A DNA stretch of 64,000 bases from Selaginella moellendorffii (taxonomy: Eukaryota > Plantae > Lycopodiophyta). The translations under genes were made by a program, and so were the position numbers. The notes under the pieces were generated by a model that was given only the letters and a program-made list of their open reading frames with translations, was not told the DNA's origin and did not search any database. Below, piece after piece: positions 43,121 to 63,376 of the stretch. Position 1 is the stretch's first letter, and each line of letters opens with the position of its first letter. The stretch covers positions 1,034,654-1,098,653 of the forward strand of contig NW_003314308.1 of assembly GCF_000143415.4 (NCBI RefSeq). Direction: 5' to 3'.

Positions 43121-43197
43121 ATTATCAGGTACATGGTTTACCTTTTCTTTCTTTTGGTGATGTGGGTCATTGTGAGCTGAGTTCTTTCTTGCAGGGA

Positions 43198-54984: not shown

Positions 54985-55160
54985 AGCTTGGAAGAACACA
55001 AATTTTTGGTGAATCTGGAAGAACACACTCTAGCTAGAACTGTCCAGAGATATAGATTTCTCACTGGCTTTGCATCATTGGAAAGTACTGTTCCCGAGCA
55101 CACGGTATCAAAAAAAATCTAGAGCTTTGACTAGAACAGTCAACTCTAGTCCAATAGTGG

Positions 55161-56831
55161 TCAACGTAAGTTATCGCACGGTCTGGATGATTCTCGCAGC
55201 TCCCGAGATCGTGGAAACTTGCTGTGGAACACCCAGCTACCACTCGAGAACAAGTGTACGTAAGCTCCAGCATCCTTGGAGCTGCGCAGCTCAAACAGCT
55301 TCTCGATCGCGAGCGATGCCAGATCCCTGTTCTTGTGAGCCTTGCAAGCAGCGGCCGCCAAGCACGTCCACTCCATCGCGTCTGGCTCGAAAGGCATGCT
55401 CTCGATCAGCTCCGCGGCATCGCCCAGGAACCCGGCTCGAGCGATGAGATCGACCAAGCAGCAGTAGTGGAACTTGGTAGCATCCAGACCGTGGTCGACT
55501 CGCATCGAACGAAACAGGGATCGGCCAGTGTAAGCGTCTCCACCATAGCTGCAAGCCACCAGGACACTGACGAAGGTCGTCTCGTCGGGAGAGCACTGCC
55601 AGCAGCACCTCATCCATCCAAAACTCTCGAGTGCTCGATCGGGATGCCCGTTCTGGGCGTAGGAAGCGAGAACAACGTTCCACGAGACCAAGTCGTGCTC
55701 TTCGGCCGTGTCAAACAGGCTCCTCACTCGCTCGAGATGCCCGTTCTTGGCATAAGCGACGAGCATAGAGTTCCAAGACACCATGTTTCTCTCTGGCATC
55801 GTTTCAAAAACCTGTCTTGCTTCGTCAACATAGCCGTCGAGAGCGTAAGCGCAGAGAATCGCTGTCCAGGAGACGAGATCCTTCCTCTCCATCCCATCAA
55901 AGAACTCTTTTGCGAGCTCCAACCTTCCGTGACGAACATACGCGGAGAGAAGAACGTTCCAGGAGAAGAGATCCCACTCTGGAAACCGATCCAACAGGAT
56001 CCTTGCCTGCTCGAGATCTCCCTTGGAAGCATAGGCCGAGAGCAGCGACGTCCAGGAAACGATGTTGGTCTCTTCCATCTCATCGAAGACGGTTCTCGCG
56101 TCGTTGAGTCGGCCGTGCCGGACGTAGCCCGATAGCATCGTCGAGCACGAAACGATATCTCTTTCCGGAACACCGTGAAACAGCTTCTCTGCTTCTTCCA
56201 GATATTCGTTCTCGGTGTTTGCAGCGAGCATCGCCGACCAGGAAACTAAATCTCGCTCCGGCATCTGGATGAAGCAAGCTCTAGCTTCGTCGATGCAGTT
56301 CTTCTTCGCGTAAGTCACCACCATGCTCGTCCAGGAAATCAAGTTCCTCTCTGGCATTGAATCGAAGATGTTCTTGGCCTCGTCGACAAGTCCCCGCTGA
56401 GCATAAGCCGCGAGAATGGCGTTCCAGGAAACCATGTTTCTCTCTTGCATGGAATCAAACACTTGCTTTGCTTCGTCCAGATGCCCGTTGCGAGAATAAG
56501 CTGTGAGCATTGCCGTCCAGGCATACAAGTCCCACTGTTCCATGGCGTCAAAGATCTGCTTCGCTTGTAGCAGCTGCCCCGTCTGGGCATAAGTCGACAG
56601 CATCACCACCCAAGAGCAAACGTCCTTGCAAGTGATCGTTTGGAAGAACTCCCAGGCTTGTTCAATGCTGCCGAGCTTGGCATATTTCTGGAGGAGCTTG
56701 TTCGAAAGGTGCGTGTCACTGCTTAGAAGGTGGCGTAATCGAGAGCGAGCCTGGCGTGTCATCGAAAGGCTTGTGCACGAATCTATCAACGCGACGGGAT
56801 TGATCAACGCCAAGTTGGCAGCGTTCATCAT
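55161..56831 (-). CDS. PLS-class PPR protein with a long SS-motif run and E domain
   Basis: ~31-aa repeats (ERN.VSWN..L.AYA..G...A...F..M); HYCCLVDLIARAG; no DYW. Confidence 0.9.
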   Translation of the reverse strand: MMNAANLALINPVALIDSCTSLSMTRQARSRLRHLLSSDTHLSNKLLQKYAKLGSIEQAWEFFQTITCKDVCSWVVMLSTYAQTGQLLQAKQIFDAMEQWDLYAWTAMLTAYSRNGHLDEAKQVFDSMQERNMVSWNAILAAYAQRGLVDEAKNIFDSMPERNLISWTSMVVTYAKKNCIDEARACFIQMPERDLVSWSAMLAANTENEYLEEAEKLFHGVPERDIVSCSTMLSGYVRHGRLNDARTVFDEMEETNIVSWTSLLSAYASKGDLEQARILLDRFPEWDLFSWNVLLSAYVRHGRLELAKEFFDGMERKDLVSWTAILCAYALDGYVDEARQVFETMPERNMVSWNSMLVAYAKNGHLERVRSLFDTAEEHDLVSWNVVLASYAQNGHPDRALESFGWMRCCWQCSPDETTFVSVLVACSYGGDAYTGRSLFRSMRVDHGLDATKFHYCCLVDLIARAGFLGDAAELIESMPFEPDAMEWTCLAAAACKAHKNRDLASLAIEKLFELRSSKDAGAYVHLFSSGSWVFHSKFPRSRELRESSRPCDNLR

Positions 56832-56915
56832 CTTCCTGGGTCAAGAAATTAAAAAAAAATTCGTCAGTAAACCATGAGGAGTTTGCTAGTAAAGAACTCC
56901 AACCTTTACGCGTCT

Positions 56916-57743
56916 CTAGCATTTCTTCTTGAGAATGTAAACATCAGCCTCCTCAAAAGCGTAGTCGGGATGGAGCTGGGAACGATCGACTTTTTCGACG
57001 GCGAATCTCTCTGGACAAAGCCTCCAAAACAACTCGTGAGCCTCAGGTGATCTCACCTGGTATCCCAAAAGAATCAAACTGTCCGGCCCAGAGACATCGC
57101 TCATCGTTTGTAGCAAAGGCTCCACTCCATTCTCGATATATACCACATCCGCCGCGATCACCACGTCGAATGGAGGCTTCAAGCTCTCGATTTGTTGCTT
57201 GTTTCCCCAGTTAAGCTGTGCCACCTTCTCAAGAAAAAAGACAACAAAATATGTGTTAGAACGAAGCCACGAGCAAAGACAACGAAAACAAAGAAAAGTA
57301 GAAATGAAAGATCACTAGAGAGAGCGAAGAACGAAGGAAAGAAGTGTGTGATCCATCTAGATTACAAGTGAGAGGAAAAAATGCTATCGATCGATCGCTC
57401 ATACCTTTACTTTCTTCTTGGAGGAGAGCGATGTCGCAAGGACATTCTTCTTCACATTCCTCTTGAGCGTGGAGAGAACCGGCGGCACATCCGTGAGCAG
57501 CACCTGGCCGAGGCCCAGCAACGCCAACGCCAGGCCAGCGCCGCCACACCCAGCCCCGAGCTCAATCCCCCGCTTGCCCTGGATCCTCTCGCGAATCCCG
57601 CCCTGCCGCTCCGCCCATTTCGCCAGCACTAGCGAGCACGGCCACACCGTCGTCCCGACGTGCATCGATCCATTGTCCTGCTCCATGGCGATCTCCTCAT
57701 TGCCGATCGCGAGCTTCACCACTGGCCACGACGAATATTTCAT
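56916..57743 (-). CDS. METTL21-like lysine methyltransferase (Methyltransf_16 type), one intron ~57403-57225
   Basis: GTTVWPCSLVLA, IELGAGCG, LLTD, LNWG and DVVIAADVVY motifs. Confidence 0.9.
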
Positions 57744-57843
57744 CGCATTCTCACAATAGCCCTAATAGTGACGTGTCATCCCATCCAATGTGGCTGCCAC
57801 ATATGCGCCACGTATGAAATAGAATATTCGTACGAAAAAGTAT

Positions 57844-59730
57844 TTAAACTTGTAAAGCATTGGAGAGCATCACATAAGAGGTTGCTTGGGAGGTGTCAAA
57901 CTCGAGAACTTTAGTGGCTGCGCAGCCACCCAAGAGTGAATCGCGTTGGACAGTGGAAGCTCCAAGCATGGCACCCCATGCCTCGAGATTTGGCTTGCAA
58001 GGCATAGAGTGGATCACATCCTTGGCATTTTGGAGCTCCCCGCATCGCCCAATGACATCTACAATGCAGGCATAGTGTTCTTGAGATTGGATCACTCCAA
58101 AGTCGTGGTGCATCGAGGAGAAGAGTTGGATGCTTCGGGTTATGAGACCCAAATGGTTGCAAACCGTGAGAAGGCTCAAAAATGCGACACTGTCTGGGAT
58201 TGCGCCACGCAAGTTGAGCTCGAGAAACACCTCTACAGCTTTTCTTGGGTGGCCATTCTGGGCATATGCTGCGAGCATTGCGTTCCAAGAGACAAGATCA
58301 TGATCAAACATCGTGGCAAATGTTTTTTCTGCTTTTGCCAAGGCACCGGCTTGGACAAAAATTGTCAGCAATACGTTCCATGAAATGGTATCCCTTTCTG
58401 GCATTTCATAGAACATAGAGAGTGCTTCTTCAAAGTTCCCATTGCGTCCCAAACCGGCAACAATGATATTCCATGTCACCAAATCCCACCTTGGCATTTG
58501 GTTAAAGAGCTTTTGAGATTCATTGATGTGCCCACAATGGGCATATGCCGCAATCATGGAATTCCAAGCACCAGTGTCTCTGAAAGGCATCTTTTCAAAC
58601 ATAATTCTTGCTTGCTCTAACAACATATTTCTTGCGTAAGCTTGTAACATTACAGTCCAAGTTACAAATGTTGGATCTTCTATTTGGTCGAAAATAATCT
58701 TTGCTGAATCAAGATCTCCTGCATCGGCATAAGCTTGAATCATGCTTGTACGTGCAACTACATCGGGTTCAGGCATCATGTCAAATATCCCTTTTGCTTT
58801 TCTAATGTTTGAAACTGTGACATAAGACGCTAACATAGCATTCCATGATACATTATTCTTTTCCGGCATACTCTTAAACATCTCTTCTGCAGCATCTAAA
58901 TGCCCTGATTTGGTACTTGCTGTGAGAATTGCGGTCCAAGTTATGACGTTCCAAACTGGTGCACTCTCAAACATTTTTTTTGCTTCAGTAAGGTTTCCAT
59001 TTTGCGCATAGGCGTCAATCATGGCTGTCCAGGTAACCACATCTCTGTATGGCATTGCATAAAAAATAAGCTTTGCCTGTTCCAAATACTTAGTTTCGGC
59101 ATATGCAACAAGCATGGTGGTAAAAGTTAAGATATTTTTTTCTTGCATTTTATCAAACAAAACCTTTGCCTTGTTAAGATGGTCATTAAGTATATAAGCC
59201 TGGATCATTGCGGTGCATGATACCACAGTCACCTCTGCCATCTGCTGAAAGAGATTATTTGCCTTTTCAAAATGCCCAGTTGAGGCATATGCTGTGATGA
59301 TAATCGTCCAGGAGACATCGTTTCTGTTCTTCATTTTTTCAAATATTTCTTGAGCTTGGATCAAATTTCCATTGTCTGCATAGGCAGAAATCATCGAATT
59401 CCAAGCAATTGTGTTTTGAACTGGCATTTGCGTGAAAGTCTCTAGCGCTTGTTGAAGATAGCCATTGCGGGTATACACTTGGATCATGATGTTCCACGAG
59501 AAGAGATTGGGCTGAGGAATTCGATCGAATGCTGCTTTCGAGTCCTCGACACTTCCACATCTCCCATACATCTCCACCACCAGATTCGCCAAATACCTGT
59601 TGTGCCTATGCACACTCTCCAGGATTTGGGCATGAACTCTTCTACCCTCACTCAATTTTTTTGAAGTTCCACACTGCCGGAGGAGTACAGCAAAATGATC
59701 CTGCTCCACTCTATGTGAAGATTCTGACAT
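57844..59730 (-). CDS. PLS-class PPR protein with a long SS-motif run and E domain
   Basis: Tandem 31-aa repeats; HYACIVDVIGRCG..WGAMLGA..YVMLSN. Confidence 0.9.
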   Translation of the reverse strand: MSESSHRVEQDHFAVLLRQCGTSKKLSEGRRVHAQILESVHRHNRYLANLVVEMYGRCGSVEDSKAAFDRIPQPNLFSWNIMIQVYTRNGYLQQALETFTQMPVQNTIAWNSMISAYADNGNLIQAQEIFEKMKNRNDVSWTIIITAYASTGHFEKANNLFQQMAEVTVVSCTAMIQAYILNDHLNKAKVLFDKMQEKNILTFTTMLVAYAETKYLEQAKLIFYAMPYRDVVTWTAMIDAYAQNGNLTEAKKMFESAPVWNVITWTAILTASTKSGHLDAAEEMFKSMPEKNNVSWNAMLASYVTVSNIRKAKGIFDMMPEPDVVARTSMIQAYADAGDLDSAKIIFDQIEDPTFVTWTVMLQAYARNMLLEQARIMFEKMPFRDTGAWNSMIAAYAHCGHINESQKLFNQMPRWDLVTWNIIVAGLGRNGNFEEALSMFYEMPERDTISWNVLLTIFVQAGALAKAEKTFATMFDHDLVSWNAMLAAYAQNGHPRKAVEVFLELNLRGAIPDSVAFLSLLTVCNHLGLITRSIQLFSSMHHDFGVIQSQEHYACIVDVIGRCGELQNAKDVIHSMPCKPNLEAWGAMLGASTVQRDSLLGGCAATKVLEFDTSQATSYVMLSNALQV

Positions 59731-60663: not shown

Positions 60664-63376
60664 ATGACGTCTCTCTTCATCTTATTTGGGTTCCTAGCTT
60701 TGTCAACGGTTATTGCTGTAAGAAATTTCCTTACATGTTCATTATCTTATACATTGATTTGTAGGTTGAGGATAGTCGCGTTTATATCGTACATTTGGGC
60801 CATACTGATGGAACAAAACATCCAGATGCTATTACCGACACACATAATTCATTGCTTGCCACAGTTCTAAACAAGTACGAATTTGTTTATCTTTGTTAGT
60901 AAATTATTTCTTTTTAATTTTTTTACAGACCAAGTTATGAAGCGAGAGATCATATTATTTACAGTTACAAACACACTATTGATGGATTTGCTGTCAGGCT
61001 TACCACCAAGCAAGCAAAACACATGTCTGGTAACAATATCACTTCTATTAAATCTTATATTTTTATTTTGTCTCTTTTAAATGCAGAGCTTCCTGATGTT
61101 GTGTCTATTCATGAAAATCGCGTCCGTAAGCTTCACACTACTCGCTCTTGGGATTACATGGGGGTGAGTGGAAGTACAAATATGCCTCTATTTTCTAGCA
61201 GCAAACCTCTATGGGAACTAGGAGAATATGGAAAAAATGTGATAGTTGGGATATTAGACACAGGGGTTTGGCCAGAATCTCCAAGCTTTAACGACGATGG
61301 TATGGGCGAAATCCCCAGTAAGTGGCGAGGGATATGTCAAGAAGGAGATGCCTTCAACTCTTCACACTGCAACAGGCAAGTATCGTAGTAACAAAGTTTG
61401 CTGATAACAAATCTCTCAAATATATACAGGAAGTTGATTGGAGCACGCTACCATTTGAGAGGGTATTTGGAGGGGTTGTCAAAGAAAGAGAAGAAGGTTC
61501 CAGGAATCTTATCTGCAAGAGATGACGACGGCCATGGGACACACACAGCTTCCACTCTCGCAGGCAGATTGGTCCAAAACGCCACAGTTGTGGGGAGATT
61601 TGCCCAGGGAACTGCTGCAGGAGGAGTTCCAGGGGCGAGGGTTGCAGCATACAAAGCTTGCTGGGGGGGAGACGATGGGTATTGCCATGAGAGTGATTTG
61701 ATTGCTGCGATGGATCAAGCAGTGCACGATGGAGTGGACGTTATATCAATTTCTAATGGAGGTGAGGAATATGCTAATGACGTGGTAGCTCTTGCTGCTC
61801 TTTCCGCGGTCAAGAAAGGTGTCACCGTTGTGGCTTCTGCTGGAAACGAAGGCGTCAAAGGAATGGGCAATAGTGACCCATGGCTCATCACAGTTGGTGC
61901 TAGTAGTATGGATCGATGGGGATCAGCTCGATTATCTTTAGGCAATGGCACGACTTTCACGGTTTGTTTCTCTTTTGTGTCCATGGCTGCTTTGTTTGCT
62001 AACTCTTTCTGTGTCTAGGGTAAATCCAGACTTTCCATTGGTACAGAGAGCTTTCTTCCACTGGTTCCGGGTTATGAAGTAAACGCACCAGAGTCTACCA
62101 CACAAGACAGGTTTGAAAATTTCATTATCAAATTAATCCTGCAAAGTGTTAATAAGTGTCTCTTGTTTCAGCTTGTACTGCATGGATTATTCTTTGGACC
62201 GTGAGAAGGTCCAGGGAAAAATTGTCCTGTGCATGCGAAAGCGTGGTAAAGATACCCTTGCTCAAAGCACTGAGGTGAGGGATGCTGGTGGTGCCGGCAT
62301 GATCTTGTATGAAGATGTTAAAGACGAGCAAGAGCTGATGGATTATTGGCATTACGTGCCCTCTATACACATCTCAGCAAAGGATGCTCTCGCAGTATTT
62401 TCGTATATGAATTCGTCAAGGTTTGATATTAGTACAATTTAAAACTGTGATTTCTAACTTTTATGTTTTTGTTTTCTAGTAATCCACGAGCATATATTTC
62501 TGGATCAGATACAAATTATGGTGCCAAAGATGCTCCCGCCATGCCTGACTTTTCATCTAGAGGCCCTAGCAAGGTTTATCCAGATATTATCAAGGTAATC
62601 AGATATTACTTTTTCTCTAATAATAAAAAAACTGGTGATTTGCAGCCGGACATCACAGCACCTGGTGTTGATATTTTAGCAGCATGGCCTCCAAATGTGG
62701 ATTTGGGTGAAGGCAGAGGACGTGGAAATTTCAACTTCCAGTCTGGAACTTCAATGTCATGCCCTCATGTTGCTGCTGTGGCTGCACTCTTAAAATCATA
62801 CCACCAAGATTGGAGCCCTGCTGCAATTAAATCTGCAATATTAACAACAGGTAAGGTGGTACTTTCAATCAATCACTAAGATAGATTCTTATCATTTTGT
62901 ATATCCCAGCTTATATTGGTAATGGGCTCGTGAATGGAACACCAAATGATTTTGGAAGCGGTCATATCAATCCAAACGCGGCAGCACATCCGGGTCTGAT
63001 CTACGATCTTGACTACAACCAAATCCCAGTGAAAGCTTTTGGCGCCAACAAGATCCTGAGCAACCTCAACTTTCCGTCGGTAGGAGTCTCCCGGTTCCAC
63101 ACGAAGTACACCGTGAAGAGGACTGTGACAAATGTCGGAGACGATCGAGCAACGTATCGCGTGACCATCGATCCTCCTCCGGGGATTGCCGTCACGATTA
63201 CTCCACAAGTTTTGGAGTTCACTCGCAAAGGGCAATCCCAATCGTTTCTAGTGGATCTGAGGCTCAAGACGAAGGTGGCGAAGAGCAAGCTCCATCGCGG
63301 ATATATATTTGGCTCCTTTACATGGAAGGATGAGAGGCACACAGTGAGAAGCCCAATTGCCGTGCGCTACGCATAG
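60664..63376 (+). CDS. Subtilisin-like serine protease (I9, S8, PA, Fn3), multi-exon
   Basis: Signal peptide, LHTTRSW, ILDTG (Asp), GHGTHT (His), SGTSMSCPH (Ser) and C-terminal VRSPI. Confidence 0.93.

Follow-up and report, generated by a model that had tools for sequence, protein, structure and literature searches.

A candidate 68-nt intron occupies most of the short spacer between a methyltransferase gene and a PPR gene in Selaginella moellendorffii

In the spikemoss Selaginella moellendorffii, an 84-nt spacer separates a METTL21A-like methyltransferase (MT) gene from a downstream PPR gene, and in both haplotypes its resemblance to an intron is strong, specific and statistically unusual. 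The spacer (56832-56915, minus strand) lies in a window of 64 kb, by which we mean the whole stretch of DNA that was analysed (GL377612.1:1,034,654-1,098,653, assembly GCA_000143415.2) and in which positions are numbered here. It contains a candidate U2-type GT-AG intron of 68 nt (56836-56903, minus strand; GL377612.1:1,091,489-1,091,556), and we give a probability of roughly 0.55 to this element being a genuine intron that is spliced out of RNA extending across the MT-PPR boundary. From the sequence we infer the splicing itself, the passage of RNA across the gene boundary and the site at which this RNA would start. The MT-PPR intron is thus offered as a well-supported sequence prediction and not as a discovery.

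Five genes lie head to tail on the minus strand at this locus, in the order PPR, METTL21A-like MT, PPR, cytochrome P450 and DUF1997. The gaps between the upstream PPR and the MT, the MT and the downstream PPR, and the downstream PPR and the P450 gene are 100, 84 and 173 nt, respectively, and the gene order on the allelic locus (GL377619.1) is that of GL377612.1. The upstream PPR gene (57844-59730, minus strand) is a 628-aa ORF with PPR Pfam matches, for which the GenBank model starts at a later ATG and predicts 575 aa; it encodes an array of S-type PPR repeats that ends within an E1-like motif. The downstream PPR gene (55161-56831, minus strand), with its start ATG at 56831, is an intronless ORF of 556 aa that matches PF01535 (E = 8e-87) and PF13041 (E = 2e-71). 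On GL377619.1 (7691-8282 of locus L004), GenBank calls a 181-aa gene without a Pfam match on the strand opposite the 5′ portion of the P450 gene; this call is probably spurious.

The boundaries of the MT gene determine what can lie in the spacer. Exon 1 (57405-57743, minus strand; 113 codons) matched profile positions 4-98 of PF10294 (Methyltransf_16; E = 8e-15), and exon 2 (56916-57224, minus strand; 102 codons and a TAG stop at 56918-56916) matched positions 103-168, so that together they match the 174-position profile at full length and at adjacent positions. The exons were searched separately in the Pfam and homologue searches; the RefSeq counterpart, XP_024541864.1 (P0149; ‘protein N-lysine methyltransferase METTL21A’, 215 aa), was found via a fern homologue. 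Since 113 and 102 codons add up to the RefSeq length of 215 aa, the MT's own intron is fixed at 57404-57225 (minus strand), a 180-nt ORF-joining intron with the boundaries AAG/GTATGA and CTTGAGAAG/GTG (slashes mark exon-intron junctions). The C-terminus of the protein (…ILKKK) is conserved, and homologues stop at the same point. Therefore, no further MT coding exon is concealed in the spacer. The spikemoss and fern-like copies of the MT gene have an intron at the same position, and an orthologue found in the plant Logan run SRR33208241 (L005, 2119-2790; 63% identical) is intronless.

The earlier note on this DNA had proposed a check of whether METTL21 orthologues in related species lack a downstream PPR. 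No PPR was found within 400-900 nt downstream of the MT orthologue in three contigs from other plants, but these contigs say little on the MT-PPR pairing, because they are only 63-72% identical and come from distant plants with less compact genomes.

The candidate intron (43% T, 35% GC) occupies 81% of the gap. Its 5′ splice site (56898-56906, minus strand) reads AAG/GTTGGA, with the GT at 56903-56902 in the context AAAG/GTTGGAG. A branch-point-like TACTGAC is present at 56863-56869 (minus strand), with the branch A at 56864, so placed that 28 nt lie between it and the 3′ splice site, and the T-rich tract and 3′ splice site (56836-56859, minus strand) comprise a run of nine T at 56851-56859 and the acceptor CAG/G, with the AG at 56837-56836 in CCCAG/GAAG. 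The GT and AG termini required of a U2-type GT-AG intron are present in both haplotypes, and the CTRAY branch point expected 18-40 nt before the AG, with U-rich sequence after it, is found as TACTGAC, with its A at 28 nt and the T9 run next to it. The length of 68 nt falls within the 55-76 nt range of ORF-joining introns in the window, and the composition is similar to theirs. With the candidate removed, 12 + 4 = 16 nt would separate the MT stop from the PPR start, and the sole upstream ATG of the spacer (ATGGTTTACTGA) would be lost. All motifs described in the earlier note on the minus strand (TAG, the GTTGGAG donor, TACTGAC, the CAG acceptor and ATG) were recovered at the positions given there, and the 68-nt intron at 56903-56836 and the 16-nt remainder agreed exactly. 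Describing the intron as ‘textbook’, however, overstated the case, as the donor is weak: compared with the consensus AG/GTAAGT, it agrees at -2, -1, +1, +2 and +5 only and departs at +3, +4 and +6, and the other haplotype has GTTCGA in its place.

Splicing of the candidate would not fuse the two proteins. An in-frame stop lies just upstream of the PPR ORF, and an MT-PPR fusion through the candidate intron was rejected on account of the in-frame TAA that would stand 9 nt before the PPR ATG after splicing. Joining the donor of MT exon 1 to the candidate acceptor was also rejected, since the frame stops after 39 codons. With the MT frame already terminated and the TAA ahead of the ATG, no fusion protein can arise, and the intron would separate two complete ORFs. 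Other identities for the spacer were considered and discarded: against a structured RNA, snoRNA or tRNA, the searches gave no tRNA and no Rfam family at E ≤ 1, and folding gave no stable structure (z = +1.1); against a fragment of a repeat or transposon, the sequence is unique within the window.

We scored all GT…AG pairs of 45-150 nt on both strands (2 × 64 kb). Splice-site matrices self-trained on the ORF-joining candidates of the window were tried and abandoned, as false pairs dominated them and a stricter filter left too few introns. The window being too poor in clean introns for matrix training, we used a fixed, ad hoc, consensus-based score with terms for the donor match, the T/C tract and YAG/G, a CTRAY motif 10-50 nt upstream, and T-richness. 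The candidate scored 6.86 on this scale, which was devised after the candidate had been seen, and only five places on both strands of the window, including the candidate, reached that value. The other four were one proven intron of a subtilase gene, two that join long open frames in phase, and one within the intron region of the DUF1997 gene. When the MT-PPR spacer was subjected to dinucleotide shuffling, 3 of 5000 shuffles (0.06%) reached 6.86. The proven subtilase intron (62421-62479, plus strand; 59 nt), which separates the exon for the PA domain from that for Peptidase_S8, has the donor AAG/GTTTGA, indicating that T at +3 is tolerated and that such donors can work in S. moellendorffii. Another spacer, at 43121-43197, scored 5.79, below the MT-PPR candidate.

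The two same-strand spacers that flank the pair gave a different result. The best intron score in the 100-nt spacer that separates the upstream PPR from the MT gene (57744-57843, minus strand) was 3.16, a value reached by 1196 of 2000 shuffles, and that in the 173-nt spacer between the downstream PPR and the P450 gene (54988-55160, minus strand) was 3.85, reached by 1848 of 2000. Neither is intron-like. Intron-likeness is therefore specific to the MT-PPR gap and not a general property of T-rich gaps at this locus. Two ACGT-core motifs (TACGTGGC and GACACGTCAC) are present in the 100-nt spacer, as is a perfect 7-nt palindrome (ATGTGGC A GCCACAT), and the spacer shows 11 gap columns in alignment with the other haplotype; as ACGT-core motifs are typical of promoters, it is probably a very compact MT promoter. 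In the 173-nt spacer, a run of eight T lies 45 nt past the PPR stop and a TATAT motif lies at 55054, about 65 nt ahead of the P450 ATG, a layout that, in contrast to that of the MT-PPR gap, is compatible with a terminator followed by a promoter. The ACGT motifs in the one gap and the T8 and TATAT elements in the other suggest a unit that extends from an MT promoter to a PPR terminator.

In a comparison with the other haplotype (GL377619.1), no segment of the locus proved more diverged than the spacer, in which 7 substitutions and a 5-nt indel were counted, against a divergence of 0.6% in the MT exons and 1.4% in the PPR gene. The allelic spacer is 79 nt long and its element 63 nt. The GT, the TACTGAC and the AG are unchanged, and the donor reads AAG/GTTCGA. 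The 5-nt deletion removes TGACC, so that the acceptor reads TTTCTCAG/G; this puts the pyrimidine tract directly at the CAG and improves the acceptor. The allelic element scored 7.21, a value reached by 1 of 2000 shuffles. Retention of the signals is in itself weak evidence, since by a rough estimate there is a chance of about 40% that some 9 critical bases would escape randomly placed changes.

Analysis of the downstream PPR protein showed eleven S-type repeats at an exact 31-residue spacing, followed by a P2/L2/S2/E1-like end. The earlier note had called the protein an editing-type PPR. This designation was not borne out by the domain searches, in which neither E_motif (PF20431) nor DYW (PF14432) was matched by the full-length protein (E ≤ 0.01) or by its last 179 residues (E ≤ 10), leaving the editing type unproven. 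The nearest relatives are DYW-type PLS proteins (At4g02750-like; 30-42% identity), and ‘PLS-class relative’ appears a fair label. The protein shares with PLS-class E/DYW editing factors the 31-residue S-type motifs and the P2/L2/S2/E1-like C-terminal region, but differs from them in its S-only array and in having no detectable E_motif or DYW domain. We take this array to be the ‘SS’ type described for Selaginella. As the array is S-only, the protein would need a partner in trans for any editing activity. It also has no transit-peptide-like extension and no E2, and its C-terminal tail is odd. A word search with the whole protein returned only paralogues at ≤ 42% identity and no orthologues from other Selaginella species. 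Both PPR proteins of the locus have S-only arrays of exact 31-residue period, stop in or just after the E1-like motif, and are without E2, DYW or an obvious transit-peptide extension. They are just 34% identical, and hence do not derive from a recent tandem duplication. The downstream ORF is intact in both haplotypes, with 24 substitutions, 15 amino acid differences and a pN/pS of 0.47, compared with an allelic pN/pS of 0.12 for the upstream PPR. The downstream PPR is thus probably functional, under weaker constraint than its upstream neighbour.

If the element is an intron, the following course of events may be envisaged. RNA would start at or within the MT gene and continue into the PPR gene, RNA polymerase II passing the 84-nt gap without terminating. 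Splicing would then remove nearly the whole gap, including one upstream AUG, to give a processed RNA in which only 16 nt separate the stop codon of the MT from the start codon of the PPR. The PPR would be translated either by reinitiation 16 nt after the 215-codon ORF or from a shorter transcript that begins inside the MT gene, and it might in this way borrow a promoter. Between them, the MT exons place 15 ATGs before the start codon of the PPR, and the MT AUG itself has a purine at -3. Leaky scanning is consequently unlikely, so that the PPR would need reinitiation or the shorter transcript, and its translation from a two-gene mRNA would be doubtful and inefficient. Junction-dependent decay would not be set off by a stop codon that lies 12 nt before an exon junction, but a 3′ region of 1.7 kb would make the two-gene RNA decay-prone in plants. 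Exact-product look-ups in the assembly index for six proteins (the PPR from each haplotype, the upstream PPR, MT exon 1 and two ORFs of 43121-43197) returned nothing beyond the two genome scaffolds, so that no assembled RNA contig with the PPR, the MT or their exon ORFs was retrieved. Word searches likewise turned up no near-identical fragments, and the MT protein cluster has four members, all of them NCBI entries. As the collection covers the MT-PPR locus thinly, the absence of RNA contigs says nothing either way.

The main rival account, which we hold less probable, is that the spacer is an ordinary, very compact intergenic region. The MT transcript would then be cleaved and polyadenylated either at the T-rich tract or a short way into the PPR gene, the PPR start site would be in or next to the spacer, and the splice motifs would be present by chance. 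U-rich sequence with a YA dinucleotide is characteristic of plant cleavage sites, and the T-rich tract past the stop codon could equally serve as a poly(A)-site element. The weak donor in both alleles, the faster evolution of the spacer than of any other segment of the locus, the lack of an RNA-derived contig showing splicing in look-ups of a collection that is thin here, and the tight packing of a genome in which the neighbouring 100- and 173-nt gaps evidently work without intron-like sequence are all in keeping with this account. Chance, however, accounts poorly for an intron score reached by so few shuffles and, across 128 kb, by no site that is clearly not an intron, or for signals that are all kept in both haplotypes while a deletion betters the acceptor. 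In addition, the spacer carries neither an AATAAA-like, A-rich poly(A)-signal hexamer nor a TATA-like hexamer, and its 84 nt offer hardly any space for a 3′ UTR, poly(A) signal, core promoter and 5′ UTR and are too few for a normal terminator together with a promoter.

Should the intron be real, it could also be a leader intron of an mRNA that encodes the PPR alone and is initiated within the MT gene, either in exon 2 or in the 180-nt intron, so that the two transcription units overlap. We regard this sub-case as somewhat doubtful. Splicing would take out the only AUG of the spacer, which is a usual effect of leader introns, and the AUGs of the MT exons disfavour translation of the PPR from the full two-gene RNA; most second genes of Arabidopsis read-through pairs also have start sites of their own (PMC9768141). 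A TATATAT motif within MT exon 2, near 57136-57142, would fit such a start, but it is in coding sequence and may be meaningless, and a leader from exon 2 would retain in-frame MT AUGs as upstream ORFs. That the PPR is a decaying or silent copy, and that read-through and splicing are transcriptional noise cleared by nonsense-mediated decay, seems to us improbable. The protein does lack a transit-peptide-like extension, E2 and DYW domain, has an odd tail and shows a pN/pS that is relaxed relative to the neighbouring PPR, and Arabidopsis read-through RNAs are targets of nonsense-mediated decay (PMC9768141). Nevertheless, its 556 codons have remained open in both haplotypes despite the 24 substitutions, pN/pS is below 1, and the 31-residue repeat register is perfectly preserved.

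Splicing of the 68-nt element, which remains our preferred reading, has its closest known counterpart in Arabidopsis. The nuclear genes of land plants are, to our knowledge, held to be transcribed one gene per mRNA. In Arabidopsis, Kurihara et al. (2022; PMC9768141) described 271 read-through loci, of which 158 show intergenic splicing. PPR genes often take part in such pairs, and a PPR/TPR gene is the first of the pair in 28 cases; the RNAs amount to about 0.06% of transcripts, are targets of nonsense-mediated decay, and their second ORFs are rarely translated (PMC9768141). As at the MT-PPR locus, adjacent same-strand genes for complete proteins are involved, with an intron located between the end of one gene and the beginning of the next, and splicing has been proposed to delete the termination region of the first gene, as we propose here. 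The Arabidopsis genes, however, are normally spaced, and a promoter and poly(A) site of its own is the rule for each (PMC9768141), whereas the MT-PPR gap measures merely 84 nt, 81% of it intron, the PPR gene is the second of the pair, and the arrangement is known from genomic sequence. The MT-PPR arrangement is likely to represent an extremely compact form of this Arabidopsis-type intergenic splicing and read-through.

Green algae produce polycistronic nuclear mRNAs (Gallaher et al., 2021; PMC7896298), the downstream ORF of which is translated by leaky scanning (PMC11892635). These resemble the predicted spliced RNA in carrying two complete, out-of-frame ORFs a few nt apart (16 nt at MT-PPR after predicted splicing) on a single RNA with a cap and a poly(A) tail. 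Their upstream ORFs are short, though, whereas that of the MT has 215 codons and exons with 15 AUGs, so that leaky scanning does not fit, and the spikemoss is a vascular plant and not a chlorophyte. A third parallel is with the leader introns of plant 5′ UTRs: the candidate is likewise a short, U-rich GT-AG intron that ends 4 nt before a start codon and removes an upstream AUG, but the ‘exon’ before it would consist of the 3′ coding end of a different gene.

Intergenically spliced read-through RNAs of Arabidopsis are known solely as rare products that are degraded. If the prediction is true, an intron that fills the whole gap between two complete genes would leave no space for separate termination and initiation, implying co-transcription that is built into the locus in a vascular plant, and this would bear on the route to expression of the several hundred PPR genes of Selaginella. 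The strongest version of this idea, in which the MT and PPR genes constitutively yield a spliced two-gene mRNA, the PPR is made by reinitiation, and intron-filled spacers are a general, promoterless route to expression for newly inserted Selaginella PPRs, we consider unlikely. The RefSeq model P0008 (L007; GL377572.1, 3001-11053), an 851-aa protein with PPR repeats and a P450 domain, was considered as a comparable tight pair but set aside, as it spans 8 kb at another locus; it may be a merged gene model or a read-through product.
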